A stretch of DNA of 64,000 nt from positions 2,480,001 to 2,544,000 of the forward strand of contig OZ116698.1 in the NCBI GenBank assembly GCA_964199315.1. The letters are read 5' to 3'. Below are positions 22,001-63,961 of the stretch, in pieces; within the stretch, counting starts at the first letter, position 1, and every line of letters begins with the position of its first letter. Source of the stretch: Orbicella franksi (Eukaryota). A program made the position numbers and the translations under genes. The notes under the pieces were generated by a model. The model made no database searches and had not been told where the DNA came from. It saw nothing but the letters and a program-made list of their open reading frames with translations.

Positions 22001-23001
22001 CAGTAGATGCTGTGGTGTATTTCAGAATATACAATGCCACTATGTCAATCACTAATGTAGAGAATGCCAATCGTTCCACACGTCTGCTGGCCCAGACCAC
22101 ATTGCGAAATGTGCTGGGAACCAAGAACTTGAGTGAGATCTTGGGTGAAAGAGAAAGCATCAGTGATACTATGCAGGTAAATACTACTGCTATTTAATTA
22201 GTTAAAAGAACAATACATTACATGTATTTCATCTTTGAGTGATAGTATTCTTTGGTATTGGTAGAAAGGCCTAACATACTTTATTTGTGTTCAATTTCAA
22301 ACAGACCTCTCTGGATGAGGCCACTGATCCCTGGGGTGTCAAAGTGGAGCGTGTCGAAGTGTATGTACATCATGTTTCATTTTTAGGTTCTACTGACATT
22401 ATTTTGTCATTAATTTGGTTTACCTAAAACAAGCTTGTGCACCAGCTTGTTTTACTATTTCCAGTCAAGTTGTTACGCAAAGTGTCTTGGCTGGTCCTGT
22501 CCTGGTCACAGGCAAATTACTGCAAGTTTCTGTTTCCAATTCCCAGGATTTTCTATTTTTTCAATTGTGCATTGTTTGCTTGATATGTACAGGAAGGATG
22601 TGCGTCTTCCTCAACAGCTCCAGAGAGCCATGGCAGCTGAAGCTGAAGCCTCTCGTGAAGCTCGTGCTAAGGTATAACTAATAGGTTTTTCTCTACAGTG
22701 TTGTTGAGTGGTTGGTAAACAATCCTCTCATTAAAAACATAGTATTTAATTTTTATCTTCAGCTGAATTTCAGCTCAATGTCAAAACTTTACTGTCATTT
22801 TAGGTCATTGCTGCTGAGGGTGAGATGAATGCCTCTCGTGCACTGAAGGAAGCTGCTGAGATCATTTCTGAGTCTCCTTCTGCTCTCCAGCTGCGATACC
22901 TTCAGACCCTGACAACCATCTCTGCTGAGAAGAATTCCACTATCATTTTCCCACTTCCTGTCAACTTTTTGTCCAGACTTCTTCCAAGTGAGAACAAATG
23001 A
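16075..23001 (+). CDS. STOM: Stomatin (band 7/SPFH family, mec-2-like) paralogue 1, 286 aa
   Basis: Exons 16075-16117, 18625-18645, 18869-18972, 19505-19577, 20732-20814, 21973-22176, 22305-22360, 22593-22671, 22804-23001. Translates to the hydrophobic hairpin (CTLP), [51 protein letters not shown] and STIIFPLP. The symbol denotes family, not proven orthology. Confidence 0.95.
17251..17995. repeat. Two adjacent dispersed repeats, each with a long internal palindrome (17251-17392 and 17863-17975)
   Basis: The first has imperfect arms of ~58 bp. The second has perfect 30-bp arms gtttttgtgatatccagaataatcaaggtc / gaccttgattattctggatatcacaaaaac. Confidence 0.7.
18087..18548. mobile_element. MITE with internal accctatttatgacc subrepeats
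   Basis: TIRs ggggggttactccc / gggagtaacccccc. Confidence 0.65.
20094..20658. mobile_element. Tc1/mariner-like MITE
   Basis: TIRs cagtcgaacctgtatataacgg / ccgttatatacaggtcccactg, with TA on the right flank. Related to 54498-54973 and 63028-63996. Confidence 0.6.
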
Positions 23002-23064
23002 CTAGATGAACAGAAGAAAGACATAGCCACTGAGTCACCTTTGACTGAAGTTAGTGTTCTTTGA
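23002..23064 (+). other. Predicted stop-codon readthrough extension of stomatin 1: (X)LDEQKKDIATESPLTEVSVL*
   Basis: TGA-CTAG context. Twenty open codons whose last 11 match the paralogue 3 extension at 10 of 11 residues. Confidence 0.8.
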
Positions 23065-31411: not shown

Positions 31412-34400
31412 ATGGAAGAAGAAGGTCAGTCAATTTAACTCTTTTTCACCATATTAACTTCAAGGACTTGCATCTTGGTTGTGTAATTCAGCCGGAGTTC
31501 ATAGCTGGGAGTCGATCTTCGTTGATAGCTACGGGAAGTAGAGAAGCTAGGAGGAGGAATCGATAATGACAAACCTGCTAGTGTAATCATTTTTTGCTGA
31601 TATTGTGCGCATTAGTTACATTAACTGTCTTCTAAAAGCTGTTTTGTTTTGTTATATGTTACTCTGGAATAAAAGCAACGTAAAATCTGTATGGAAAGAT
31701 ATAGGTTAGGTGCCGTGCTGCAGTGTAAATTCGTCAAATCGTTCAGTTCAGCACTTCGTGATCATTCTAACATTCAAAACAGACTTGAGCTCCGCGATGT
31801 TTGTCATGCGCGAAGCTTAATCCAAGTGCTAAATTTAACAATAACATCACCGAAATATGGCTTCAGATCAAAGTCAAACTCTGGGCAGAAGTGCACAACA
31901 TAACAACAGATATGACAATGCGGCATTGAGAAGGTTGCGAAGATTTACGCACAAAAATTCCGTTTCGTATCAAGACAAACCATCAACTGTATGAGCTTCT
32001 TTGTGACAGATGAGATTTTACATGTAAGCTTTCTTCAGTTCGGCAAATCTCGAATTGCAAGGTCTAGAATGGACTCGTGCATAACGTATGATCCGCTGTT
32101 TTCGAACCCTCATGGATGGCATGTGACGGCTGTACCGAGAGAATTTAAGCTTACCTGTTGTCACAATTAGATGTTGTTGTTTTTTTTCTTGTGAAAAAAG
32201 AAATGTGAAAGGACTAGTGGCAAGAATTTTTTCTTTATATTTTTAGATAAAAGTCAGTTAATTCCCAACATTCGAACAACTACTGTAAATAATTAATATG
32301 GGAACATGTCGGTTTATATCTTCCTTTGGTAAAGACGTCAGTTTCCCTCTACAGTAAAAGGCTGGTAAACATGAAACACATGTAAGCATACGTACAAGCT
32401 AATAAAGAAATATGATATGCTTCCATTTTGATCAATTCTCTTATGCTTCGTAAATGCTAGTCAGAACATTAGGTTGTCAGCAGCTGTAGAGATGGTTTGA
32501 AGAACTTTTGATAACACTCCACCTAAATTAGACGAAACATCCAACTTTTATCCATAAAAATAAGTGTGCATTAAACCATTGTTGTTGGAATAAATTTCTT
32601 GTAGATACTTGAAGTCAAGAGTGTGTAGGTCCAGAAAATATCCATATCCCCACCATGGAGGTTATTTCACATAAGACCCCCCCACCTCCCATCTCCCTGG
32701 AGTTTCCATGTTTTGAACATGAAAATAACTCTCTCGCCCTCAGAAATTTCCATGAGAATTATGTACACCCCCTTTGGCAAGGAAGAATGCTAAAGTTATA
32801 GTAAACACACAAGGTTGTCCAAGCTACACATCACTGCTGTCTATTATCGATCAATTGCAGCATCTGAAAAAGGTGCGCATGAAGAAAACTTGCAGCAGTT
32901 TCTTAAACATGCTTCAGAAGTAATCAATAAAAGGTAACTTGTTAACTGTTAAATAAAAAAGAAATTGTCAAATGCCTGTATGGCCGCGCCCTTCCGAAAT
33001 CTTAAAATGCAGTAAATTTCCCGTGAAGGACCATGCAAAATGTGAATGAAATACACTGAATGCAAATATGGAGGACCACACAGTTGGTGCCTGGGACAAG
33101 TTGCATGAAAGCGAGGCTAGTCGGGCTTTGATGTTTTGTTTTGACAATGCTTCTCCAGAAAAGTCTTGCTTTATCGTTGATTTGGTCCATTTTGTGTTCC
33201 TGAATGCCACCAGAAGGGAGTGAAATCTTCCACAGCAGAGAAAGTGTTTTTTTTTTTCAGTTTGCCCATTCACCTCTGAGGATGTTCACAATCACGGAAG
33301 GAACTGTTTAGTTTGTTCGTTGCATTTCAGGCTGGAAGATCTTAGAAAATGTGTAAGGGATTGCATTTAGCGCCAAGTCGTTGTCATTAGGCTCAAAGCA
33401 TTGCTGAAATCATTACATCTTTTCTAGCATCAATAATGAAATGAAAGGCCAAAATTAACAAACTAGGCTAGTCACCAGTGCTTTTTGGTCCATAAAGTGG
33501 CTTTGTGTAGACTGGTAACAAGTAATGAGTTCTTCTTGGAGCCTCACGATAAAGAATAATTTTCTGTTTCAAGGGCAACTGGCAGCTGATCATAGTCTAT
33601 TAATTTGGCAAAAAGTTACTATAGTTTTTATTTATGAGACAGCATTTATTCAAAGAAAATATGCCTGTGCAATCGAAATCTGTTCCAAACGTGGGGTGTG
33701 TCTTATAATTGAGTATGTTTGCGCCACAAAATACAATTTTGCCAAATTTCCCTGATGATTAAACTTGTCAAACATCCACTAACATGTCATTCACTAACAT
33801 TCACATCATCGTAACCAGAGATTTTTCTGCATAAAACAAAAAGTGTTCCATGTTAACTAGCAATAAAGCAGCTGCCTACCAACCCCACATGACAAGCAAA
33901 AAGTCTGATAAGATAGATTATTTTAAAGTAGATTTTGGCCTAAATCAACGATGAAAACACACGATTTTGTTCCGTGATGAATGTTTAACCTCCAGGCATT
34001 CCATCCATCTTTTTGCGAATAGCCTGGAAGCTAGTTTTTCATCATCTGGTGTGAAAGGACTGTAACTAGCCAATTTGGAAGTATATTGTTGTTGTCGAAG
34101 TGAATATGGTAAAAAATTTCCCTGTAATTCAGGTTGCGTCTTATAACTGAATATTTAGGAGAAGTTTTCAGTTTGTAAACTTGATAAGCTTATGTCTAAA
34201 AGTTAACAATGCATCTCATAACCAAGTGCACCTTATAACTAAGTGCACCTTATAAGCAAACAAATACAGTGAAAGTGATTTGCAGATTCTTACCGTACTT
34301 AATTTTTAATTAGTTGACTTGTGCAGGGCTTGAAATTAACAAAATCCTTAAGTTGGCATTTGGCGACTAAGTGTTAAAAAATAGCCACTAAATGTAAATT

Positions 34401-40400: not shown

Positions 40401-40852
40401 GTCTTAGTTCCCCATTGGATTTATGAACTTCTTCTTTGATTTGCAGGAAGGATGTGCGTCTTCCTCAACAGCTTCAGAGAGCCATGGCAGCTGAAGCTGA
40501 AGCCTCCCGTGAAGCTCGTGCTAAGGTATATCTAAAAGGTTTTTCTATTCAGAGTCTTTGAGTGGTTGGTAAGCAATCCCCGCAGTATAGCCATAGTATT
40601 TGTGCCTTGAAATTCTGTTTTTCTCTGCTCAATGTCGAAACTTCACCATTTTAGGTCATTGCTGCTGAGGGTGAGATGAATGCCTCTCGTGCTCTGAAGG
40701 AAGCTGCTGACATCATTTCTGAGTCTCCTTCTGCTCTCCAGCTGCGATACCTTCAGACGCTGACAACCATCTCAGCTGAAAAGAATTCCACAGTCCTTTT
40801 CCCTCTTCCTGTGGATTTCCTCAGCAGATTTTTGCCTGATAGGAAAGGGTAA
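31412..40852 (+). CDS. STOM: Stomatin paralogue 2, 267 aa
   Basis: Exons 31412-31424, 34998-35095, 35258-35330, 35562-35644, 39768-39971, 40202-40257, 40447-40525, 40655-40852. Core exon lengths 73/83/204/56/79 are the same as in paralogue 1; no internal stops. The 13-nt first exon (ATGGAAGAAGAAG|gtcagt) is less certain. Confidence 0.93.
32622..33550 (+). mobile_element. Partial copy of the TGTGTRGTTCCAGAAAATATCC-ended DNA transposon family
   Basis: The left terminus and internal blocks align with 56278-57000. Confidence 0.6.
34324..34812. mobile_element. CAGGG-ended MITE (uninterrupted copy)
   Basis: TIRs cagggcttgaaatt / aatttcaagccctg; collinear with 37515-39258. Confidence 0.8.
35810..37460 (+). 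pseudogene. Crypton-type tyrosine recombinase transposon (DUF3504/ZMYM-KCTD1-like), frameshifted, in intron 4 of stomatin 2
   Basis: ORF pieces 35810-36136, 36237-36761 and 36737-37126 give [47 protein letters not shown]...KDY (the R-K-HxxR-H-Y catalytic set). A terminal palindrome lies at 37373-37454. Confidence 0.8.
37515..39258. mobile_element. Second copy of the CAGGG-ended MITE, split by an L1 insertion
   Basis: TIRs cagggcacgaaatt / aatttcgagccctg; AAATA on both flanks. The halves 37515-37824 and 39076-39258 rejoin to match 34324-34812. Confidence 0.8.
37825..39075 (-). mobile_element. 5'-truncated L1/Tx1-clade LINE with poly(A) tail and 14-bp TSD
   Basis: ORF2 C-terminus with QTIWNNKFI and the zinc-finger motif [19 protein letters not shown]22 run at 37827-37848 (poly-A on the minus strand). 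TSD TATAAATTGTCTTT at 37811-37824 and 39076-39089. Confidence 0.9.
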
Positions 40853-40909
40853 CTAGAAAGACTGAGGAAACTTGAATTTCACTCATCGATGCAAGATATT
40901 TCACTTTAG
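40853..40909 (+). other. Possible readthrough extension of stomatin 2: (X)LERLRKLEFHSSMQDISL*
   Basis: TAA-CTAG context; 18 open codons with weak similarity to the other two tails (SSMQDISL vs SPMTEVSVL). Confidence 0.45.
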
Positions 40910-41004
40910 ACATTAAAGTAGTCAGAGCTTTTCATTCTAATGGTATGCAGTAGTTTTTCCTGGAGAGCAATCTTCGCTGACGTCCTTGTTTGCATTAATT
41001 TTTA

Positions 41005-41470
41005 GTTTGTATAGTGTGATCCTCCAGGTGAGGGTAGTTCTGAAAAGAACTGTTGTTGCCTCTTAACAGATGTCAACAACTACCGGCGCCTTACGAACAA
41101 CTTATCCACGACGGAAACAAAACCGACCAACGGATTTCTAACAGACCGACTTGATTTGACCAACAATAGACGGACCAAAAAGCGACCAATTTTACTAACG
41201 ATAGATGGATCGAAACCAACCACAGACTGATGACAAACTTTACGCGAGTCTTTCAGCCAATACCAACACTGATGGCTAAACTGACCAATCACTTTCAACA
41301 GACCAAACTTATAACATTACGACTGACAAACGCTATTCACGTCACTCGGAAGATGACTTCCGCTCAGGTTGTCGAAACGTCAGTCAATAACAACAGTTCT
41401 TTTCAGAACTACTCTCACCCCAACGATCACACTATACGAACTACTGATACTCCTGGGTCCAAACCATTTG
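41005..41470 (+). mobile_element. Penelope-like retroelement remnant (copy 2) with inverted terminal segments and a hammerhead motif
   Basis: 41009-41058 is the reverse complement of ~41388-41437. Hammerhead-like cactCGGAAGAtgac...gtcGAAAcGTCagtc at 41343-41385. The interior is homologous to 4870-5060. Confidence 0.65.
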
Positions 41471-43600: not shown

Positions 43601-43608
43601 TGGCATCA

Positions 43609-43992
43609 GTATTTTCGTTCCAAATTTCGTGAAATTCTAATGAGTGGTTCTTGAGAAATAGGCGTATTTCCGAGAGTGCAATTTTTCATTCAATCGCAAT
43701 TTTTTTGACTTACTACGCATGCGTTGCATTTAACTGGGTTCTTTTGGTAACAAAGAAAAAGCTGAGAATTGCTGGGTTCTTTGCATCGTTACCTTTTCTA
43801 GCATGTCTTTGTAATAAAAGACTAAAGCCATCAATACACCACGTTCAATTCTAGAGAAAAATAATACAGATAGTGCGGGTGTTGAGTAAATAAAATGATC
43901 GCTCTATTGACGGCATGTTTGTTTTTTGCAATCCTTGTGCACGCGCTGAATTGCATCAGCAAAAGCGCGCGCGAAAACTGTGTTCGGCCACC
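43609..43992 (-). mobile_element. Partial copy of the TTAA-flanked Kolobok-like element at 63176-63961
   Basis: Reverse complement of 63176-63558; ends ggccacc|ttaa. Fragments of the other end occur at ~48825-49020 and ~52371-52540. Confidence 0.75.
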
Positions 43993-44461
43993 TTAAATGC
44001 TCAAGGAACAGTGAAAAAAGGTTCTTTGGTAGGGCAATTAACAACTTCTTGTAGAAAATACGAAAAGCAACGTGAATACTTTTGGAACAACTTTTGAGCA
44101 ACTTTTTGACTTTTGGGGCAACATTTAAGCAAATTTTTGAGAAATGTTGAGCATGGGCAGCTAGCCGTACTCTCCATTTTCTCGCTCCGGGAGGTCGAGG
44201 GCGGGAAAATGATGAGAGACCCTGGGAACGAGGCTGCAGAAACCTCCGTTGGCGGGGTGGGGGTGGTGGGGGGTAGAGGGGGTAAAATATTAGGAAAAAT
44301 GGAAAATTCTGTGCTCATCAGGCACACGTATGTGCGCTCATGTCTTGAAAGGGTTAATTAAACCGAAGGGCAAAGATTTTATGGTAGTTTGAAAACTTGC
44401 AAAATTACTGAAGGATTTGTATGGACAACCATTGGAGCGTGACTGGAGGGCAAAACGTTCT

Positions 44462-44877: not shown

Positions 44878-47190
44878 GATGGCTAGGTGGAAAACGCGGG
44901 ACCGGGATCCTGGGGTACGGGGTACGGGGTCCCGGGGTGTGGAAAACGCGTGGTCTGGTGGAAAATGCGGGGTCTACGCGGAAACCACGGGGTCTAAGAG
45001 GAAAACACGGGGAAAACCGTTTTTCGAGGAAATATGAATTTTCTTCACTAAAATGAGAAGTCGAAATTTTGTTATTTTAAAATTGCAATGAAAATCAATT
45101 CCGTTTCTCGGCGTAAAACGCGTTTTTTGATCAAAGCAAATTAAACACTTCGTGGCAAAGAACACCATGCAATAGCCAACGTGCCGTGCAGCGGTTTTCT
45201 TTTGCATGGGACGTCTATGTTATTTTTCTTAGTAACTTGCGTGGTTTTTTTATACCTTTGAAAAAGAAATAATGAAATAATAAAGATTGTTTTGCTTACT
45301 ATCTTAAACCATGAAAAAGCCTTTCTATACAAATAATCACTTTCGACCGGTCATTATTTATCGACTGAGGGATGGCGTGGGATTTTCGGTTAAAGATAGT
45401 AACATTTTGCTGATCCCCCACTTAAATGTTATTTTATTGAATTATTCCCTTCATAGCTATTAATAAATTTCATGATCCCCCTCAATGTCTTCGCACACAT
45501 GTTCACCCTTCGACATGTATATTTAGTGCTTTTAACGGTCATATGACAGTAATATTTCTAATCATGATGCTGACTTACAGATTAATGAAGCCGCCATGGT
45601 GCAGTCTCTTGATCCGTGTCTTCCCGATATCTGATCAGGGCTCTAACAGAAGTTTTCACAGGCGTCCAATAAAGCATAACAGGCGACATAAATTAAAGTG
45701 AGGTCCAGGATTCGCCCGAAGGGACAAGCCAGCTTACGGGGTCCGGGGGTACGTTCCCCCAGAAAAGTTTCAAATTTTAGGTGGCCAAAGAATAAGATGT
45801 GATTTCATGCATTTTGGGGGGAAGGTGTTACGGAAAATGAGCTGTTTATGATCATAAAATTAGATGTAGCAAGTAGCGCTGTTTCACCATTCTAAATAAA
45901 ATACTTTTTTCTTCTTGAAAAGTCACAGTCTGTAAGTCTTAATTTATTGTTATATGTTTTTAAATTTCAATGACCAGAACAGGTGGCTACATTCGATTTT
46001 ACAGCCGGTAGAATTCCGCCGTTCTACTGAGAGCCCCGTGACTAATGTGGTCTGATGTCAGTTGACATAACAGCAACTAACCATCCCAAGTGTTTGGAAA
46101 CTGCAAAGTTACTTTTTAGAGTGCAAAAAAGCCGTCCACCAAGTCTGTATGGGTATGTGACATTTAGTGATCATCCCTTTCGGGCTCTCAGTTATGACTG
46201 ATTCCTTCCTCTGGCATCCTAAAAATCCGATGATCCCCCCAAAAATCTCCCCCCACCCCGCTCCAGGGGATAAATACTGACCGGCCCCCAATCTACAATA
46301 CGACAGAAGTAATTATAAACCTGAAGTCTGATCATTTATGAATCGCTAGTGAGGTCCCAGTCGATAGTTAATGTAAAGTGAATAACATTTTGATTTCACT
46401 AGAACAACATTTTTTTTTTGTAAACTCGTGTGTAAGGAGACGGCGAAAACGAAATCCACATTCGCAAGAGTGGAGATTATTCGCGCTGAAATGAACGCAA
46501 GCAAGTACAGTAAGGGGCCGACTTAAGGAACACCAGAATTTATTTTGGAACTGCTATTTCAAGAAGGTTACTGTATTTTCTCCATTAATAACCCTTAAAA
46601 CCTCCTTAGCTTTTGTTTCAAATTTGGCCTGGCTGGGCCAGGCGTATTTTATTTGTTTATTCTTTATATTCCATGGTAATTTTTGTTGCCATTTCTTGAG
46701 GTCCTACTTACAAGTAACCGGCTTTTAATCGAGCAAATACGGCAACTGTCGCTTTTCATGGTTAAAGATACTAAGCAAAACAATCTTTATTATTTCAATA
46801 TGTTTATTTAAAGGTAAAACAAAAATCCACGCAGGTTATTGCGAAAAATAAAATACACGCCCCATGCAAAAGAAAACCACTGCACGGCACGTTGGCTCTT
46901 GAATGGTTTTCTTTCCACGAAATGTTTGAGAAACGCGTTTCACGCCGTGATTTTCATTGTAATTTTAAAAATTCGACTTCTCATTTTAGAGAGGAAAATT
47001 CATATTTTGGCGAAACAACGTTTCCCCCGTGTTTTCCACTCAGACCCTGTGTTTTCCACCAAACCCTGTGTTTTCCACCAGACCCCGTGTTTTCCACACC
47101 CTGCGTTTTCCACACCCCGCGTTTTCCACACTCCGGGACCCCGAACCCCGTACCACGGGACACCGGCCCCGCGTTTTCCACCTAGCCGTC
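44878..47190. mobile_element. Non-autonomous DNA transposon with ~330-bp terminal inverted repeats
   Basis: 44878-~45210 is the reverse complement of ~46857-47190 (ggctaggtggaaaacgcggg...); no transposase ORF inside. Confidence 0.75.
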
Positions 47191-50600: not shown

Positions 50601-53600
50601 ACTGGAATTAGTTCCACAGACTTTGAAACGCTACTTTCAAAATTTTCTGCTTAAAGCTAACCAGCAATTTGTAGAAATACTACGGACAACCTATATCTTC
50701 CAATCCCGCAGTATTTATAAAATAGCTGGCAAAGTTGTGTGATCAATCAAGAAGCGTTACGACAAATAATTTATACTAATATGTAAATAGGTCACAACTG
50801 TATGCCGCCAACCAACACTCATTTCTCTTTCAATTTAGATAAAAGTCAAAGATTAATCCTTTAGAAATACATGATAACAACAAAAGTGTTAGACTGACAG
50901 AGTTTTTCGAAGGTTTGGAAATCAGCAGTGTGACAAACATTCTGTGCAAATAGTGCAGTGTCGAAAATATGACCGCATAACATTATCTGCAGACCGCTTA
51001 GGGAACACATCCTTTTCACTTATCTGACGAATTTCACGCAAACTTTGAGAAAAATTTACATTGGTTATTTGGAGTTACGACTTAAATGTGTGAGAATGTG
51101 AAATCGGTAATTGTGTGAAATGTTTCCTTCTGCCTTGCTTTCTGCAGCTTCAAAAATACAGGTCCAAACAGTACGATTTTAAATCAGTCGAAGCCAGTGT
51201 TTTGGAGGTCATCAAGTCTCAAAAACTGCAACAATTACGTCGCTCTTATAAACATGAAGCATTCAACAGAAAGTAAAACAAAAACTGGATTTAATAGGAC
51301 AATCATATCTTGACATAATACATTCTTGCTAAGGACAAATGTAAACGGGCTATAAACACGTGTGGAAATCTTGCATTTAGGTGATGAAATTACCATACAA
51401 ACAGTCCTTGAGTTTTCTTTCCTGCTTTTCGTTTGCCTGCGCCTCCACTTCGTATCTAGCTTTCCATTCCTAATATAGAAGCAGTTTGTCCGCAAAGAAG
51501 TCTTCCCCTTAGTCGCTTGAAATATTGTAAATTTCTCTCAAAGCTCTAAGCAGTGAGTTCACAGTTGTCAAACATGCTCAATCGAAGTTTATTTCGGAGT
51601 CTTCCGAATCGAAACTTAACTCTGACTCCAGTGACGAAAAAGAAATGGTTCTGAAACAAAACTTGGACGTTTTAGTCCCAGAATACATTGGAACAATTTG
51701 ATTAGTTTTGTTTTCCATTTTCTGCAGCAAATACAGAGAGCTGATGAAGGCGCCATTGTGTTTGGTTCCTGGGTAGACGTCATCAGCAACCGCCGCCCCA
51801 GAATATGGTCACACAACACTTTAAGCGCTACTTTGAAAGGGCATAGAAAATTGAGGATTCAACCAAATTAAAAAATTTTTTGGCCAAAATGCCTCCAAAT
51901 AATAAGTGGACTCGTTTTAGTGAAAAAAAAAAATCGGGAGGTTAGGTGCACTTTAAATGAATATTGTGGTCAAATACAGTAAACTAACTAAGCACACTTC
52001 AGCAAGATAATCTCTTTAAGGTCATTAAAGCAAGCAATGTGAAATTTTGTTTGTTTGTAAGCGATTAAACCACTTGTATTTTTGTTTTGGTCTTTATTTT
52101 ATAGATGATGATATTTCCCGTGGTTGTTGCGACTATGTACTGACAATTTTTTCAGTCCTCATTTTTATTTGTACTTTGCCTTTCTCCCTGTGCTTTTGTT
52201 TGAAGGTAATGTCTATAATAATATTATTGTTGTTTTGTTAACCTGGCTCCCTATTTCCTGATAGTTTTTTTGAATGATGATGTGGTAATAAATGAATGAA
52301 GTCAGTGCTCACTGAGCACTTTTCGCTCTAACTATTGACGAGCAGTATAACCTTGTGTAAGTCCTCATGTAAGGTGACCAAACACAGTTTTTGATGCCTG
52401 AGCTTTATTCACCCTTTTTTCTAAAACCCCTGATCCTTTGGTTGCAAAAATGGCAAGATGCAAGTTAACAAAACAGAGTTTGTGTGTTGGTAGTTTAACT
52501 GACACATGCGCTGTTGCCAGGGGAACATAAATACATGCAATGTCAACAATTTTTCAGTTTTTCATTCTATCAAGAAATCACGTCCATAGATCAATTTGTT
52601 ATGCCAAATTTAGCAAATATGTGAAGTTTCATAAGAATCTGTTGCAAAGTCATGAAAATATGCAACCCCTAAACTTGCCAATTTTTACTAAGAACTCTAG
52701 GCGACGGGACAAGCATTGCCCAGCATTTTTTCTGCCCTTTTATCATACACTGATGCCCACCTCTGTGTATTGGTGATTGCAGGGGAATTTTAAGAAGTCA
52801 AATGCCTTATTCATTTACCAATAGGTAGTTCAGTAACTAACTATTGATCAATTTGACACGGTCCAGCTTGCTTGACTAAAATATTTCATTTAGATAGTAC
52901 AAGAATATGAAAGAGCAGTTATATTCCGTCTTGGTCGATTGTTGTCTGGAGGAGCTAAAGGACCAGGTAACACTTTACTGTTTACGCCTTTCATAATTTA
53001 TATTACTACTTTCTCTGTTCTGTCCAGTAGCCCAGGGGCTAGTGAATTATGTTGTTGGGCTAGTGGTTTCTATCCTCTGCTTGCCCAGTGGGTATGTGTG
53101 TATTTCTTTAGGAGGGGGAAGAGGGGGGGGGGGGGGGCAGATTTTGGGGTACAGATTTTTGTATTTATTTAATATGGAATTAGTTAATCATGCTAGTAAG
53201 GAATTTTTTTGAGTTACTGAGATTGACTTTCAGGCCAGTACGTCAAAATTGATTTGCTTTGCACCCTGATGTTGGAATGGAGTAGTTTGATGTTTTGATT
53301 GTCAAGAAGCCAATCCTGAAGTACTTGTAGTGAAGTGATTACTTTCCCTTTCTGGACAGATATTTTCCATAAGTTTGCCTTCGCAGTACAATTGATCAGC
53401 AAGCCATGTATGAACTGCTCATTCATTGTTAGTCCCTGTTCAGTCAAATTACTACATCAGAAGAGCAAATTAGTAGGGTTTTGAATACAGCAGATTTCTT
53501 GTAAGGGAGAAGGATACTGGGAAAATTGTCAAATTCAAGTGTCATTAACACTGTTTTGTCAGGCATTTTTTCCCTGGTTCTTCAGCTCTTTCTTGTCTGA

Positions 53601-56600
53601 TTTTGTGACTATGATGTATTTGTAGGGTTGTTTTTCATTTTGCCCTGCATTGACTCCTATCAGAAAGTGGATTTGAGGACAGTGTCATTTGATGTTCCAC
53701 CACAGGAGGTACTAACAGATTTAGGTTATGTTAAATCAATCTGTAGGCTGTGTTCTGTGGTAGCCTTGATAACAAGCAAGCGGCTATCTTTATCTTCAGA
53801 TTCTGACCAAAGACAGCGTGACTGTGGCAGTAGATGCTGTTGTTTACTTCAGAATCAGTGACCCCACTATGTCAGTCACCAATGTGGAAAAGGTTGATCA
53901 GTCAACTCGCCTGCTAGCTCAGACAACATTGCGAAACTTTCTGGGCACCAAAAACCTGAGTGAAATTTTAGCAGACCGTGAAGAAATCAGCCATGCCATG
54001 CAGGTATGAATAATGATACAATGAACATTGCTCTTAAAGTGTAATAACTTGGAGGTTGATGTAAATTGATGATATATTATTTAGTATAGATAGTTATCTG
54101 TTCTGTATACTGTCAAATACAGACTTTGTGGATTTACGATCACAAGTGTTTATTTTGAGATCTCCCTTATGAGGTCAATTTCTGAACAATCAGGGTAGAC
54201 ATTAGGATCTAACCTGGGTTTTACTTTAGGCATTCTTATTTGTTTTGGTGGTGAGAGGGTGAAAAACTAAGGAATGCCATCATATATTTATTTGAGCAGT
54301 CCACAGTAAAAAGTCAGGAATCTGGACTTTTTTTGATTGTTCATAAAACAAAATACAATATTCAGTATTGCTCTGATTGGTTCCCTAAGTAAGTAAGGAG
54401 GGAAGGAAAGAAGGAAGGAAGGAAGGAAGGAAGGAAGGAAGGAAGGGAGGAAGGGAGGAAGGGAGGGAGGGAGGAAGGAAGGGAAGGGAGGGAAGTACAA
54501 TGAAACCTGTATTAATCGGACCTCATATTAAGCAGACCCCCTCTATTAAGCGGACACTAGCTTGAGTCCCTAAATTTCCTTCCCACATTTACTGTAAAAT
54601 AAACCTGCATTGAGTGGACACCTCTGTTAAGCGGACATGGACTCCAATATTAAGCCATTTTGTTTCACAAAACCTGCAATAAGCGGACACTTCAAGGGCA
54701 TTTGGCCTCTGAAAGTTCAGCTGAGACTCCTTTAACATTGTTCAGCAATGCTATTTTAAAGCTAAATGATTATTCCAGATTGCTGCATTGACTGACTGCA
54801 CATTGTGCTATGAGCAGTCTTTAATCTCACACTGTGTTACACTGTGCTACAAAAGGGTTAATAATCAGCTATTATTGCACAACATATTGAAACCTGTTTT
54901 GAGCAGACACCAGCTGTATTTAGCAGACACTAATGAGGATCCCAAGGGTGTTCGCTTAATACAGGTTTCACTGTATGAAGAGTAATGTTTTCTTGATGTT
55001 GTTATTGTAACTTGTTGTTGCAGTCCTCGCTGGATACTGCTACTGATCCTTGGGGGGTGAAAGTGGAACGTGTGGAAGTGTAAGTGTCACAGACAGTGGT
55101 AATAGGGAGTTAAAGCAAATCGCTATGGCTGGCGCTGATATGGCTGCCGGAAGTAAATTTCCCCCAAAATGAGACATTGCACATGTACGTCAGTCGCATC
55201 CAGCCGTAGCGTGAAATCTGACTGAGTGAGTCGGGATGTTTTGCCGTAGTGGCTACTACGTCGGGTCTATTTTGCTTCTGTGGCCCTTTTCAACGGACTT
55301 CTCGGCATTTTAAGAATTGCATTGGATACTATATCCTTAAAACTCAATTTAAGTCAAAGATTGTGTCAAGGTTGCCTCTCATAAGCTTGTAAATCCGTAT
55401 CCTGAATTTACGATAAGTTTTAGCAAAGGTGTTGGAATGGCAAAGCGAATCTAGTGAAATATTCGTGTTGAGCACAAGGTTGTTTTTCTTCGGTTAAGTT
55501 TGCTTTGAGGGTTTAGTGAAGATGTTTTTTATCTGGATAACTATATGATGCTCTTTTGCTTCTTTGAGTATTGATATATTTGTGTTCTTCACTCGATATT
55601 CTTTGAGACATTTGTCTCTGAAATCACATATTTCATCCATCAAATTGTTATGGTACAAAGTGTATGGCATTCACTTTCGCTCAGAAATAACCTGTTCTGG
55701 CGTCCGACCAAATAACAGTCATCGTCCTTTGAGCGAAGCCATTTGGCTGTGAGAAACTAAATGAAAGAGATTTTAAACTCCTTAGCCGATGTTTCTCTCA
55801 TCTTTGTATTTCGCTTTACGCGCTAAACTTAAAATTTGGCAGACCACTGAGACGTACTCTCCCCAGACCTTTTCAGACACGGCAGCCGTAGTAGCAGCAG
55901 CCATAGTGATTTGCTTAAACTCCCTAATAAGTTTGCACAACCAAGTGACTGACTATTAAACAACTTGTGATTTGATTGGCTGTACATGATGATGATTATA
56001 AATAGCGGTTTTAGTTAAACATGTAGCTTGTTACTATTGATGGTGTAGTAAAGTTTGATAGACATGCTGTTTTTGACAGATTCTTATCAAAAACTCCATA
56101 AGTCTCCAAGTTTTATTTGATTCATAAGAAAAAGTAGTAATGCACACTTGGGATTATTCTGGACATTCTCATGCCTTGGTCTGCTCTTGGAGACTGGAGT
56201 TAGCCATCAAATGATACTTGTTTTCCTGAGTGAGAATTTTAAAACACATATTTGTTTCAAGAATGATGTTTTCTTATTGTGTAGTTCCAGAAAATATCCA
56301 TACCCCCACCACAGAGGGAATTTCACACAAGTTCCCCCTCCTTCCCAGAATTTCCATTTTTTGAGCACAAAAATCCCCCACCCCTTCAGAATTTCCACAA
56401 GTTTTATGTATACCACCCATACCCTCTGGAAAAAATAGTTTTGGCAAGAAAGTGTGTTAAAGTTAAAGTTAACACTCCAAACACTTAGCTGTCTGCATTC
56501 CATGTCACTGCTGTTTATTCTCGAGTGATCGTAGCATCTGAAGATACACACAGAGAAAACATACAGCAGTTTATTTAAACATGCTTTAAAAGAAAATAGA

Positions 56601-58247
56601 TAAAATGGTAACTTGTCAAATTACCTTCCTAAACGACTAAGTCTCTTTGTAAATGTGGTACAATTTCTGTTGAAGGACTGATGAGTGTGGATGAAATTGA
56701 CACCATACTTTTAATCGAGAACACAATTGCCGACACACTCGCAACAAAAGCCAATTTTACAGCAAAATTACATACAAATGGACAGAGATAAACAAGAATA
56801 AGAAATTCTCAAGGTTATGAAATCTTAACATCATTTCTACCTTTGTAAAGAAATTCATTTTCACGAAAGAAATTGACTGCCACTTGACAGCTTCCAAGAC
56901 CGATGTGAAAACAAACTAGGCTTGTCACCAGTGCTTTTTGGTCTACATGGTGACTCCAATGTAGACTGGTAACAAGTAATGTTGGCCATTTCCACATAAC
57001 GGCACGTTCTTCGCTAGCTTCCAAAGTGCTTTTTGAAGAAAGAAAATTTATTTCAAATATAATGCGATTCAAATACAAGTATTCAAGCTACTATTTTTCA
57101 CATGAAAGATCTACTTAGTAGGTAAGAAAGGATTTTTGAACAGCTAGATCGATACTTGAATCCATATTGAATCAAAGGGCATCTGGAAACGAAATCGACC
57201 ATCCAACCCCCCTCCCCTCCAGAATTTCTTGGGTCTTTGATCCCCACCCCTTCGGAATTTCCAATACTCTTCGTGGTAGGGGTATGGATATTTTCTGGAA
57301 CCACACATTAACTCTTTGGGTGGTGATATTTTATGTGACCCCATCCCCTTGCTGTGTGGCCTTCTTTCACAAGGACATTTGATCTACGGCTGCACTCCTC
57401 ATTCAACTCTCTTTGTTCTATTTTTGCATCAATTGGCCAATTCCCCCTATGGGTTGGGCCTGCAGGGAATCATGGTACTTGTATTACTCACCTTGGACTG
57501 GATATTTATTTTGATGAATACAACTACCATGATGTCCCTCAGGCTCGTCTCATAGAGGGTATTGGTCATAAAGATTTTCAGGGTTTGTGCGTCACAATTA
57601 TGCACTGGAAAAACAAGTTCATCACATCTAACCCTTTTCAGTTCCTTTGTATGCCATCTGGTAGCCTCCTTCTAAGCATAAAGGTTGTGTATCATTTTGA
57701 AAAAACTAGGCATTTGTGGTGGAAAGATAAACAACAGAAAGTCCTACATTCAATTTCTCAGCTGACAGTTGTATTGTCTCTTATGTCTTTAGGAAGGATG
57801 TGCGTCTCCCACAACAGCTCCAGAGAGCCATGGCAGCTGAGGCTGAAGCCACCCGTGATGCACGTGCTAAGGTAGGTCTGTTAACAAGCAGTTGATTTCA
57901 CATTAAATATTGGGATTACACACTCCTGCCTAGTCACTACTACTAGTTTATTTCATTTCGAACATTGTCTATGTTTCATTTGTGGGCTAATGGAGAGATA
58001 GTGGTTTCTGATGTCCTTGTGATTAACTCCAAGTTGTTTCTTACCATTATTCCAGGTCATTGCTGCTGAGGGTGAGATGAATGCCTCTCGTGCTCTGAAG
58101 GAAGCTGCTGACATCATTTCTGAGTCTCCTTCTGCTCTTCAGCTGCGATACCTCCAAACGCTGACATCCATCTCAGCTGAGAAAAATTCCACTATCATCT
58201 TCCCTCTTCCTGTTGATTTCCTTAGTAGATTTTTGCCAAACAAGTGA
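47643..58247 (+). CDS. STOM: Stomatin paralogue 3, 266 aa
   Basis: Exons 47643-47655, 52105-52205, 52894-52966, 53626-53708, 53800-54003, 55024-55079, 57793-57871, 58056-58247. Same core exon lengths and phases as the other paralogues; open frame. The 13-nt first exon (ATGGCTTCGGATG|gtaaga) is less certain. Confidence 0.93.
50164..51952. mobile_element. Kolobok-like non-autonomous DNA transposon
   Basis: TTAA on both flanks; TIRs agtgcaccgaacccc / ggaggttaggtgcact with purine-start termini. Confidence 0.75.
54395..54494. repeat. (GGAA)n/(GGGA)n purine microsatellite
   Basis: Directly visible. Confidence 0.9.
54498..54973. mobile_element. Tc1/mariner-like MITE
   Basis: TA|caatgaaacctgtattaa ... 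ttaatacaggtttcactg|TA. Confidence 0.75.
55104..55925. mobile_element. MITE with AGGGAG termini and a 3-bp flanking duplication
   Basis: agggagttaaagcaaatcgctatggctg / cagccatagtgatttgcttaaactccct; AAT on both sides. Confidence 0.7.
56278..57307. mobile_element. DNA transposon of the TGTGTRGTTCCAGAAAATATCC family (both TIRs present)
   Basis: tgtgtagttccagaaaatatccatacccccaccac / gtggtaggggtatggatattttctggaaccacaca. A short relative lies at ~60102-60260. Confidence 0.75.
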
Positions 58248-58319
58248 CTAGACGGCCAAAAGGGGACAAACAAGGAACGCTATACTGAGTCACCAATGAC
58301 AGAAGTTAGTGTTCTTTAA
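58248..58319 (+). other. Predicted stop-codon readthrough extension of stomatin 3: (X)LDGQKGTNKERYTESPMTEVSVL*
   Basis: TGA-CTAG context; 23 open codons; conserved with the paralogue 1 extension. Confidence 0.8.
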
Positions 58320-60384
58320 AATGAAGCTGCTTCTAATGACACTTGCATGTATAACTTAGCTTGTACAGTAATTTTTTGTTCAAAGTTTTAAGATTGTCGC
58401 CCAGTTGTTTGACAACTATTTAAGTTGATTAACCCTATTTAGCCTGGGCTTCTTGTTTTGTTCATGCACTTAGTCCAAGGGAGGTGGGGGCACAAACCCA
58501 TGCATCCTCAAAAGAATTCTCTCAATGGTAGTGAAACTTGTAAGGTTTTTTAAAAATTCATGCCTGTTACTGAAGTGATAATCACATGCTGTTTATAACA
58601 CCACAGAATGCCAAAATTATGTCACACTTTTTCAAATGTCCACCATCTTGGATTTCAAATCTTTTTGAAATTAGTCAAGAACAGCTCCCAAATGGGTTCA
58701 AAAAATCTGGCAAATATCAGGATAAAAGAACTGCAGAGAATTTGTTATTTGTCGTCATAATATCAAAATTTTGACAAAAGCAAACTTTTAAGCACATGGA
58801 AAATATTTCATTTTGGTGAAACACTCTCTTAAACCATGGATGCTAGTACCTTGGAAACATCAAGTTAGGTGACCAAAAGCCAAGGCAGACACTTTGTACA
58901 CACCCTCCCCCTCCTCCCCCCTCAGGCTAAATATGGTGAAGTATTTTATTACTGGTACTGGTACTGGTAATGTTTTGTGGCAGTGTCATTCCTAATCCTC
59001 TTTAAAGTGAGCCATATGTTGAACAATGTTTGTAACATGTCAGCAATCATGTGGAAACCTTTTAACTAGGTGATGTGCTTCTGTCTAATGTGCTAGAGGA
59101 AACTTTGTACATGTACTTGATTGCAAGTTGGTCATGTTGATGTTTCATCTAAAGTTACCCTAATTATGGCCCCAACGATTCCAATTCCACCATCCTTGGT
59201 TCACAGAGGAATTTGCATGTGGGTTTGCGGGTGGAGCTCAAGTGCACAACTCCAATGAGGTTTATCAACTCAGTTTTTGTAGTTTTTTGTATCAAAGGCA
59301 AACAGGAATTTAAAAATAATGCAAGATGTATGTATTTTAAAAACTGAAAGATAAATTGCCTTTGATGTTGATGCTGCACCCTTGGGCTGACCTGTTATTG
59401 GGACAGGAAAGTTGTCAAATACCCAGAGGGGGAGGGGCTGTGAAGGGGCTTGGAATTCACAGAGCCATTAGCAGATCAGCAGCAAGTTCATTAAATGAAG
59501 GCAGAGGCTGTAGATAGTTGGCACGACTGTATGCTTATGTATAAAGATGCCAGATTTTACAAAGTCCTTGAGAAAGTAAGGAAAATAATAATATGGATAT
59601 CAATTTTGTCAAAACGATGCATTACCTTTTCTGCTTGAGCATTAGTTATTCAGGATCAGGTTGTTATTTAGCATGGTACTAAGTGCATTGATAAGTGATT
59701 GTATGAAGTAGATTTACTATTTACATATGGCTCATGAAGACAGACTGTATGAAAAGTCCCACATTTTGTCTGAAGTCCAGTCATATGTCTAGTATCTGGA
59801 TGGAGTGACATTAATATCCAAGAAGGATAATGATGCAAGTAGTAGTCTGTAGCAGTCACTAGGACTATGTGTAATGTTATAATGATCTTCAATTTTACAA
59901 TACCTGAAAGTGTTTTCTTAAAATAACTATTTAATAATGAGCATCTTAAAATTAATGTTGGTATAACCACCCTTGTAACAGGGAACTTTTCGGAAACACA
60001 GTAGTACAGTTACGAAAGCTTTTGATATTTAACATGTAGAACATTATACCAGTGTATCACATTAAAGTTGAGAAAATTGTTTATATGTCATCATTCTCAA
60101 ATGTGTAGCTCCAGAAAATATCCATACCTCCCCCACAGAAGGAGTTTTTCCAAGACCTCCCACTCCTCTGGAAATTCCAATTAAACTTGATACAAATTCA
60201 AATCCCTTCTGTATGGGGGGGGGGGGGGGGGGGGGAGTATGGACATTTTCTGGTACTGCAATATGTTATAAATGTCCTGAGCTGTATTCAATGTCAAGAG
60301 AGCAACCTTGGTATGATGTGTATTGTGATGGTAACTAGCCAGAAACATTTGTGAGCCTGTGTTCCTTTCCCCACAATAATTCAA

Positions 60385-61185
60385 GGGAGGGCTTGTCTTT
60401 GAGAATGTTGGCCCTTAGGCCTTGATGGTTGTATTTAACAAGTGTAAGGGAGGGCTCTTATTTGAGAATGTTGGATCTTGGGTCTTGATGGTCTTATTTA
60501 CCCAGTGTGAGGGAGGGCTCTTCTTTAAGAATGTTGGCCCTTAGGTCTTGATGGTCTTATTTACCCAGTGTGAGGGAGGGCTCTTCTTTAAGAATGTTGG
60601 CCCTTAGGTCTTGATGGTCTTATTTACCCAGTGTGAGGGAGGGCTCTTCTTTAAGAATGTTGGCCCTTAGGTCTTGATGGTCTTATTTACCCAGCACAAG
60701 GGAGGTCTCTTCGTTGAGAATGTTAGCCCTTAGGTCTTGGTGGTCTTATTTACCCAGTGAGAGGGAGGGGTCTTCTTTGAGAATGTTAGCCCTTGGGTCT
60801 TGATGGTCTTATTTACCCAGTGTGAGGGAGGTCTCTTCATTGAGAATGTTAGCCCTTAGGTCTTGGTGGTCTTATTTACCCAGTGTGAGGGAGGGCTCTT
60901 CTTTGAGAATGTTAGCCCTTAGGTCTTGATGGTCTTATTTACCCAGTGTGAGGGAGGGCTCTTATTTAAGAATGTTAGCCCCTAGGTCTTGATGGTCTTA
61001 TTTACCCAGTGTGAGGGAGGGCTCTTCGTTGAGAATGTTGGACCTTAGGTCTTGATGGTCTTACTTACCCAGCATGAGGGAGGGCTCTTTGAGAATGTTG
61101 GATCTTAGGTCTTGATGGTCTTATTTATGAAGAGTGAGGGAGGGTTCTTATTTGAGAATGTTGCCCCCAGGTCTTAATAGTCTTA
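60385..61185. repeat. 63-bp minisatellite, ~12-13 copies
   Basis: Unit gagggagggctcttctttaagaatgttggcccttaggtcttgatggtcttatttacccagtgt. Confidence 0.9.
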
Positions 61186-62804: not shown

Positions 62805-63175
62805 TCACAACCTTCCTCTTGACTGCATAAGGCCCATGATCAAAAAAGCTTGCACACCGGTGATGTGACCAGCATCATGAATTTAAAGACTAATCGAATA
62901 TATATAATATTAAAAGAGGAATAGAAGTAAGGACTTGCTCCTAATGTGCACTTAATAAATCCCATCGCTTCTAATACAACTCAATACATTTTCAATGAGT
63001 CTACTGTTCACTTTAGCAAAACTCAACTACATTTTGACCCCTATTAAACGGCCACCCTCAGGGAAATGGGTAGTGGCCTCCTAAAAGGGGTTGGCCATTT
63101 AATAAAGGTAAAAACAATAGAAAAACCCTCATCAGGACTTTGATTACTGGCCGCCTAATAGGGGTGACCATTTAA

Positions 63176-63961
63176 GGTGGCCAAACAGTTTTCATGCACG
63201 CTTTTGCTGATGCAATTCAGCACGTGCACAAGGATTGCAAAAAACAAACATGCTGTCAATAGAGCGATCATTTTATTTACTCAACAGCCCCACTATCTGT
63301 GCTATTTTTCTCTATAACTGAACGTGGTGTATTGATGGTTTTAGTCTTTTATTACAAAGATATGTTAGAAAGGGTAACGATGCAAAGAACCCAGTAATTC
63401 TCAGCTTTTTCTTTGTTACCAAAAGAACCCAGTTAAATGCAATGCATGCGTAGTAAGTCAACAAATTGCGATTGGATGAAAAATTGCACTCACGGAAATA
63501 CGCCTATTTCTCGAGAACCACTCATTAGAATTTCACGAAATTTGGCACGAAAATACTTTAGGAAATAAGTAACTGGAGTATTGAAAAAAACTGGACTTTA
63601 GCAAAGGAAATTCTAGATATTCCAGTGAACCTTCCACGAGGGATAATTAAAGATCTCTCTGTTAAATTATTATTAAAATGGTGTTAACTTGTGAGAATCC
63701 TTACAAGCTTGTTGCATGCAAATTATAAAGAAAATCTGACCACTACCAGTAGATTTTCTACAAATAAACAAAACCGATTTTAAAGGCCTGTTTATATTTA
63801 TTTTTGTTGCCATGGCAATGGCACATACGTCAGCTTAACCAGCAAAAAACAAAAGTTTGTGTTGTTAACTTACTTGCTGCCATTTTTGGCGACCAAGGGA
63901 TCAAGGGTTTCAGAGAAAAAGGTGAATGAAACCCAGGTATCAAAAACTGTGTTCAGCCACC
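63176..63961. mobile_element. Kolobok-like element (TTAA TSD) nested in a Tc1-like MITE spanning ~63028-63996
   Basis: ttaa|ggtggccaaacagtttt ... aaaactgtgttcagccacc|ttaa. The host MITE resumes with taggtggccgcttaacagtgtttcgactgTA. Confidence 0.75.

Follow-up and report, generated by a model that had tools for sequence, protein, structure and literature searches.

Does the stop codon of a coral stomatin gene serve only to end translation, or does it also allow, in a minority of cases, the synthesis of a longer protein? This question is raised by a 64,000-nucleotide stretch of the genome of Orbicella franksi (assembly GCA_964199315.1, contig OZ116698.1, positions 2,480,001 to 2,544,000, forward strand), which is referred to below as the window, with positions given in its coordinates. 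The window contains three tandem stomatin genes on the plus strand, here called paralogues 1, 2 and 3 (p1, p2 and p3). The annotated frame of p3 ends at a TGA followed by CTAG, beyond which the same frame stays open up to a second stop. The comparative data presented here suggest that the last exon of p3 probably carries a programmed UGA-CUAG readthrough cassette, from which a minor, extended form of stomatin would be translated under selection.

Stomatins are monotopic membrane proteins with a cytoplasmic C-terminus and serve as conserved scaffolds of ion channels and membrane microdomains. The stomatin/SPFH family, with human STOM and Caenorhabditis elegans MEC-2 as examples, has in common with p3 a Band_7 domain, a hairpin-type hydrophobic exon and a conserved C-terminal segment. 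The link between stomatin and PDZ proteins is indirect only, through shared partners such as ASIC3, and we know of no described readthrough isoform or PDZ-ligand tail in the known stomatins.

The context UGA CUA G is a published high-readthrough motif (PMC12233894, PMC4359377). In LDHBx and MDH1x, readthrough exposes a hidden peroxisomal signal and results in dual localisation of the protein, an effect that is lowered when UGA is replaced by UAA (PMC4359377). The extension of AQP4ex governs anchoring, with perivascular localisation together with alpha-syntrophin, a PDZ protein (PMC6444679), and class I PDZ patterns have been predicted in the readthrough extensions of OPRK1, OPRL1 and MTCH2 (PMC4999894). 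Our literature search returned no paper tying stomatin to readthrough and none on conserved readthrough in cnidarians, nor was the tail peptide described below found in a readthrough context.

Results

An in-frame extension follows the TGA-CTAG stop of stomatin paralogue 3

The frame between the two stops of p3 comprises 23 sense codons (58248-58316) and encodes the peptide LDGQKGTNKERYTESPMTEVSVL, composed of a variable linker and a terminal block, TESPMTEVSVL (Table 1). The original prediction had placed a TGA-CTAG cassette with a 23-codon extension ending in TEVSVL at 58245-58319, and every detail of that description proved accurate. The sequence equally bears out the presence, some 35 kb away, of a p1 cassette that has the TESPxTEVSVL end in common with p3 and differs from it by three codons in the linker: the p1 cassette lies 35,246 bp upstream, and its linker is the shorter one. 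Similarity between p3 and p1 in blastn stops exactly at the second stop. The extensions yield defined C-terminal tryptic peptides, YTESPMTEVSVL in p3, which is unique, and DIATESPLTEVSVL in p1. The altered cassette of p2 opens with TAA instead of TGA, and its tail, HSSMQDISL, is recognisably derived from ESP(L/M)TEVSVL. This cassette is probably decaying; decay is suggested, rather than retuning, because the p2 orthologue L014 has no cassette at all.

The window contains 9 copies of TGACTAG versus 7.2 expected, and the bare heptamer is thus no rarity there; what carries the signal is that it sits at the stop codon and is conserved. In the whole 497-Mb genome, the 33-nt terminal block has just two occurrences, in p1 and p3, and its reversed control none, which rules out a repeat element as the source of the block.

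Leaky context and tail are retained and lost together across species

Searched with the last exon, assemblies of coral holobionts and Tara metagenomes yielded numerous short gene calls. DNA was retrieved for 12 fragments and read through the first stop, and the comparison covers 13 additional last exons of stomatin genes in other corals. In four homologous gene calls the TGA had been read as Trp, so that the tail was visible directly, among them P0004 (...ENKWLDGQKEVECERLSESPPLTEVSVL), P0008 (...DEKKWLGSQKQEIGERSSESPLTEVSVL) and P0040 (...DAKWLGSRKEKSGSSVQENKEETKLVEVSILW...). Intact cassettes were present in seven distinct sequences: p1, p3, L005, L006, L012, L016 and L025. All seven show an invariant TGA-CTAG, preceded by a Lys codon (AAA or AAG), and an in-frame tail ending in [T/V]EVS[V/I]L and a second stop, the letters of which vary between TGA and TAA. 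Five extension lengths are seen (20 codons in p1, 21 in L025, 23 in p3, L006 and L016, 24 in L005 and 27 in L012), every one a whole-codon difference.

Other copies have lost the cassette in various ways. In L013 it is broken by a frameshift. The p1-type cassette of Desmophyllum pertusum (L015; GCA_029204205.1, MU825901.1, 11697-11760) has CCAG in place of CTAG, together with an insertion of 3 nt and a deletion of 7 nt ahead of TEVSVL, a break that is either a real loss or an assembly error. A p1-clade copy found on 40 contigs of Tara Pacific coral metagenome scaffolds (L019-L024:3262-3321) reads TGA GTAG and has lost the second stop, ending ...SLTEISVLCL-TGA, and represents lineage-specific decay of the cassette. 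L028 retains cassette remnants only, after TAA CAA, while L004 and L027 have no cassette. In total, TGA-CTAG accompanies all seven intact tails, and it is present in just one of the eight copies that lack such a tail (Fisher p=0.0014, with no correction for phylogeny); such coupled retention and loss of leaky context and tail is what a readthrough unit predicts.

In a maximum-likelihood tree of exon D and the last exon, p3 groups with L006 and L005 (support 92), p2 with L014 (support 81) and p1 with L025, L015, L016, L013 and L019 (support 85), with L012 placed outside all three clades. Since p1 and p3 each group with their own orthologues, the duplication predates the divergence of the sampled species, and by this tree the p1 lineage, the p3 lineage and the outgroup lineage L012 have each retained the cassette separately. 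The claim that retention goes beyond what recent duplication would explain is thus upheld by the tree, although, as set out below, not by the p1-p3 pair alone.

Protein collections add little to this comparison. A word-index search with the P0008 tail recovered only P0008, P0004 and P0001, an exhaustive HMMER search of 1.84 billion representatives recovered only P0040 and an unrelated repetitive protein, and a search from the exon of the more distant stomatin L026 (see below) gave no new read-through fragments. Little weight attaches to such negatives, since gene callers end their models at TGA; in the public collection, the tail appears only where the caller read TGA as Trp. Constitutive versions of the tail, with a sense codon in place of the stop, were found in none of these protein searches.

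The extension is conserved as coding sequence up to its second stop

The inter-stop block was compared with its downstream flank, as the original prediction had proposed, by ungapped comparison anchored on the stop; free-end global alignments are uninformative here and give 70-80% for unrelated sequence. Across the seven intact sequences, mean identity over the 30 nt preceding the second stop was 0.80, compared with 0.34 over the 30 nt that follow it, so that similarity drops to random right after the stop.

The substitutions within the tail follow the reading frame. With L012 set aside, mean pairwise distances in the terminal ten codons were 0.047 at codon positions 1 and 2 and 0.26 at position 3, a pattern that can be compared with 0.03 and 0.41 in the genuine last exon, and with 0.67 and 0.62 after the second stop. 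The same ten codons contain 2, 0 and 6 variable sites at positions 1, 2 and 3, respectively (Fisher p=0.007), and both variable first-position sites include Leu-synonymous changes. A minimum of about nine synonymous changes stands against a single non-synonymous one, Leu to Met in p3. By this codon-level comparison, the in-frame extension is conserved with a protein-coding pattern to the next stop, more weakly so when L012 is included, and the proposal of purifying selection on the terminal 11 or so residues, with a free linker ahead of them, is supported across species. The LD noted at the start of the extension does recur in p1 and p3. A constraint on the peptide is the poorer explanation for it: other species have LG, and the conserved L-D/G is most simply the translation of CTA-G.

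Conservation does not follow an RNA or DNA element

A short block that is conserved behind a stop codon could also be an untranslated 3' untranslated region (3' UTR) element, for instance a target site of a microRNA or an RNA-binding protein, an AP-1 site or a small hairpin, with the open frame being incidental. The block is indeed short, p1 and p3 allow a GTCA/TGAC hairpin of 4-5 bp to be drawn, the AP-1-type heptamer TGAGTCA is present in both cassettes, and CTGAAGTTAGTGTTCTGTGA is intact in D. pertusum despite the frame-breaking 7-nt deletion. This 20-nt identity, however, is expected by descent, since L015 is only about 8% diverged from p1. TGAGTCA is missing from L005, L006, L016 and L012, four of the seven intact cassettes. 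Neither the AP-1 site nor the hairpin is conserved across species as an object in its own right. The RNAalifold consensus of the aligned cassettes reaches just -2.6 kcal/mol, which is not meaningful, and single-sequence folds are no better than those of shuffled sequences (z-scores -1.5 to +0.2). The variation, on the other hand, falls at third positions, a stop is kept whether as TGA or as TAA, all five linker lengths are in frame and conservation is coupled to the leaky stop context. The original prediction had named an RNA or DNA element, conserved irrespective of codon position and frame, as the finding that would overturn it; conservation was found to follow both, and we regard such an element as a very unlikely explanation.

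The spliced messenger RNA runs colinear and unedited through the first stop

An extension could also be translated by recoding of another kind, through selenocysteine insertion at UGA, adenosine-to-inosine (A-to-I) editing of UGA to UGG, or a splice that bypasses the stop. UGA is a selenocysteine codon, and RNA editing is known in cnidarians. Raw poly(A) RNA sequencing (RNA-seq) reads and RNA contigs were mapped to 55000-60400, with only the best-supported events listed. Junctions 55079>57793 (116 reads) and 57871>58056 (210 reads) were seen in run X23, depth was continuous from the last exon to about 60050-60100, with a 3' bias in the stranded run X21, and RNA contigs were colinear with the genome over 58109-59909 and 58953-60139, including the stop and the extension. 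Among the RNA-seq events listed, no joint leaves the last exon or skips the stop, and no variant, A>G included, is listed at 58245-58247 (threshold 3%, about 260 reads). The sole variant listed in 58056-58400 lies at position 58383 and is fixed; this A>G difference, present in all reads of runs X21 and X23 and in the X1 contig, is a strain single-nucleotide polymorphism in the 3' UTR rather than editing.

Splicing and A-to-I editing are thus unlikely routes to the extension, given colinear RNA, no bypassing joint and no variant listed at the TGA. As for a selenoprotein, a scan of 57700-60400 against Rfam at E<=1 returned no selenocysteine insertion sequence (SECIS), just two chance matches to long non-coding RNAs. 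Moreover, conservation of CTAG is predicted by readthrough and not by selenocysteine, editing or splicing. Recoding of these kinds therefore seems highly improbable.

The tail ends in a PDZ-ligand-like motif

The tail ends in -S-V-L in p3, p1, L005, L006, L016 and L025, and in -S-I-L in L012, both of which satisfy the class I PDZ-binding pattern ([ST]-x-[hydrophobic]-COOH). A hidden type 1 signal for peroxisomal targeting (PTS1; [SAC][KRH][LM]) was considered and rejected, as the residue at -1 in S-V-L is not a basic one. Because the C-terminus of stomatin is cytoplasmic, the tail would most plausibly be read by a PDZ scaffold, and binding to such a scaffold is a reasonable candidate for the function of the tail, though we would put it at somewhat under an even chance.

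Single-exon PDZ domains occur in the genome at L032 (G000:C13:19647087-19647326), syntrophin-like by eye, and at L035 (G000:C10:18687947-18688177), NHERF1-like (PDB match, E 5.5e-22), and these two domains are candidate readers. Co-folding of the NHERF1-like PDZ domain with residues 70-102 of P0001 gave an interface score (ipSAE) of 0.42 versus 0.14 for the best control, weak support from a measure that is not calibrated on peptides; the runs agreed in at least 53% of contacts, with a predicted local distance difference test (pLDDT) score of at least 46 for the partner. Of 78 solved complexes, 51 reach the mark applied, as do 2 of 108 mismatches, and passes at or below 0.60 are more often wrong than right. 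In our view this predicted complex does not amount to evidence for binding.

A more distant stomatin (...FLPDGK), on an ENA contig of ERZ25073755 (L026:10172-10249), has TGA CTAT followed by 24 in-frame codons and EDTSF-TAA. The sequence of this extension is unrelated to the p1/p3 tail, and -EDTSF fits the class I pattern, which suggests convergence on a hidden PDZ ligand, as a single unreplicated hint. According to published work, readthrough can also occur at UGA CUA T, and UAA makes the stop tighter (PMC4359377); these points bear on L026 with its TGA-CTAT and on p2 with its TAA, respectively.

Divergence of the paralogues and points that weigh against readthrough

Gene-wide, p1 and p3 differ with a Nei-Gojobori dS (synonymous divergence) of 0.83 and dN (non-synonymous divergence) of 0.089 (omega 0.11), and on these estimates they are old duplicates. 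The many synonymous differences between them that had been cited in favour of selection are therefore real at the scale of the gene. They do not extend to the last exon, where third-position divergence is only 0.20, compared with a gene-wide pS (proportion of synonymous differences) of 0.50. The 3' exons of the three paralogues also resemble one another much more closely than the 5' exons do. Exon F (22593-22671, 40447-40525 and 57793-57871), together with the last exons, stands out in this respect; identities in exon F are 91-97.5%, and for p1-p2 exon F reaches 97.5% but exon A only 67.8%. Either gene conversion or a strong constraint on synonymous sites at the 3' end is suggested.

Several observations weigh against readthrough under selection. 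The three differences in the 33-nt block between p1 and p3 give P=0.08 at the local third-position rate of 0.20, so that the pairwise argument for selection is weaker than it looks, and the paralogues appear to have been homogenised in part at their 3' exons. When L012 is included, the codon-position bias over ten codons is not significant (p=0.26); four further non-synonymous substitutions (ESP to ETK, T to V, V to I) come from this sequence, in the block's front half, leaving only EVS[V/I]L strictly universal across the seven intact tails. The cassette has been lost in L013, L015, L019, L028, p2 and L014, so some gene copies can do without it. The loci used for comparison are mostly from metagenome or holobiont assemblies, and single-base indels in them may be assembly errors. 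The class I PDZ pattern, finally, is permissive, as about one in 20 random C-termini fit it.

The similarity of the 3' exons, the low last-exon divergence and the P value of the block would all be compatible with a cassette that is a relic of old C-terminal coding sequence, or the product of recent conversion between paralogues, and no longer under selection. A conversion tract, however, would not leave the diverged linker with its 3-codon indel that separates the two conserved blocks of p1 and p3, nor the random sequence after the second stop, where 22 of 30 positions differ. Intact cassettes are moreover found in separate species within the p1 clade and within the p3 clade, as well as in an outgroup lineage, whereas unmaintained copies decay quickly, through frameshift, stop loss or context loss, as in L013, L015, L019 and L028. 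We thus consider a relic or conversion product unlikely, and would rest the case for selection on the cross-species alignments, not on the p1-p3 pair alone.

The stomatin cluster and the gene model of paralogue 3

Exons of the three genes were modelled from the hairpin-type hydrophobic exon to the stop, by mutual homology and AG/GT boundaries (Table 1). Exon D of p3 contains a match to Pfam Band_7 (PF01145) at 53794-54009, with 44.6 bits versus a cut-off of 23.6, the full spliced model aligns with coral stomatin fragments, and the protein sequence of the last exon is 88-100% identical to coral stomatin C-terminal fragments. The canonical protein of p1 ends in LLPSENK. A fourth, more distant stomatin paralogue, 62 kb downstream, ends in TAA GAG and has no cassette.

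Table 1. Positions of the p3 gene model and of the stomatin cassettes in the window
Feature	Position	Strand	Basis or remark
p3 exon A	acceptor near 52105 to 52205, modelled from 52116	+	paralogue homology; ATG exon not located
p3 other upstream coding exons	52894-52966, 53626-53708, 53800-54003, 55024-55079, 57793-57871	+	homology, AG/GT boundaries
p3 last annotated coding exon	58056-58244	+	63 codons, end FLSRFLPNK
p3 first stop TGA, context TGA CTA G	58245-58251 (TGA 58245-58247)	+	sequence
p3 variable linker, 12 codons, LDGQKGTNKERY	58248-58283	+	poorly conserved beyond first few codons
p3 terminal block TESPMTEVSVL	58284-58316	+	conserved across homologues
p3 second stop TAA	58317-58319	+	stop in 7/7 intact cassettes
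p3 3' UTR, about 1.77 kb	58320-60085	+	ATTAAA at 60061-60066; RNA-seq depth
p1 cassette: TGA-CTAG, 20 codons LDEQKKDIA + TESPLTEVSVL, TGA 23062-23064	22999-23064	+	
p2 altered cassette: TAA-CTAG, 18 codons ending HSSMQDISL, then TAG	40850-40909	+	

Inverted repeat pairs lie between and after the stomatin genes (43608-44003 and 63165-63557, 93% identity; 44878-45317 and 46753-47190, 75%; 41003-41057 and 41389-41443, 89%) and are probably transposon remnants. A dispersed repeat at 56278-56445, 60102-60250 and 32622-32945, of which one copy lies just beyond the polyadenylation site of p3, is covered by RNA contigs to a very high depth, with numerous chimeric joints, and is probably a transcribed element resembling a short interspersed element (SINE) or a miniature inverted-repeat transposable element (MITE).

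Discussion

From the conserved cassette and its coupling to a leaky context we infer that readthrough occurs in p3, and at a low level. Most ribosomes would terminate at the UGA at 58245, and the context of a Lys codon, UGA and CUAG would let a near-cognate tRNA decode the UGA in a minority of rounds. Translation would then continue for 23 codons to the UAA and yield a minor isoform, in which a flexible linker is followed by the conserved acidic and hydrophobic end ...ESP(L/M)TEVSVL-COOH, which would be displayed in the cytoplasm, as the C-terminus of stomatin is. The partner that we infer for this tail is a scaffold: the free -S-V-L end would most plausibly act as a class I PDZ motif and tether a fraction of the stomatin oligomers to it.

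The readthrough isoform of vertebrate aquaporin-4 and the pair LDHBx and MDH1x are the nearest analogues. AQP4ex and the proposed p3 isoform have in common UGA CUA G (PMC4359377), the brief lengthening of a membrane protein at its C-terminus and a low level, and they differ in protein family, in the sequence of the extension and in their standing, AQP4ex having been demonstrated experimentally and the p3 isoform being proposed from comparative sequence. The canonical end of AQP4, -SSV, is already a PDZ ligand, whereas the canonical -PNK of stomatin is not, and a ligand-like end would be gained only after readthrough. LDHBx and MDH1x resemble p3 in having a UGA CUA G stop and a short extension with a conserved targeting or binding motif at the extreme C-terminus. 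Unlike theirs, the tail of p3 lacks the basic residue of PTS1, and import into the peroxisomal matrix is not expected of the p3 product because stomatin is membrane-anchored. With PhyloCSF-type readthrough candidates of Drosophila and mammals, p3 shares a protein-coding pattern of substitution between the first and the second stop.

A broader, more tentative reading, to which we give roughly one chance in three, is that the cassette represents an ancient anthozoan stomatin readthrough switch, older than the three-way duplication, that meters a small, fixed fraction of stomatin anchored to PDZ scaffolds of the NHERF or syntrophin type. Were this true, it would be, as far as our searches show, the first conserved functional readthrough in a non-bilaterian animal, pushing conserved UGA-CUAG readthrough back to the cnidarians and providing evidence for UGA-CUAG as a metazoan-wide programmed signal.

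The unique C-terminal tryptic peptide and the defined 7-nt signal are directly testable handles on the proposed isoform. For annotation, coral gene models end at the first TGA and so miss the tail. If the extended isoform is real, stomatin would join the small set of proteins for which a leaky stop codon determines localisation or partners.

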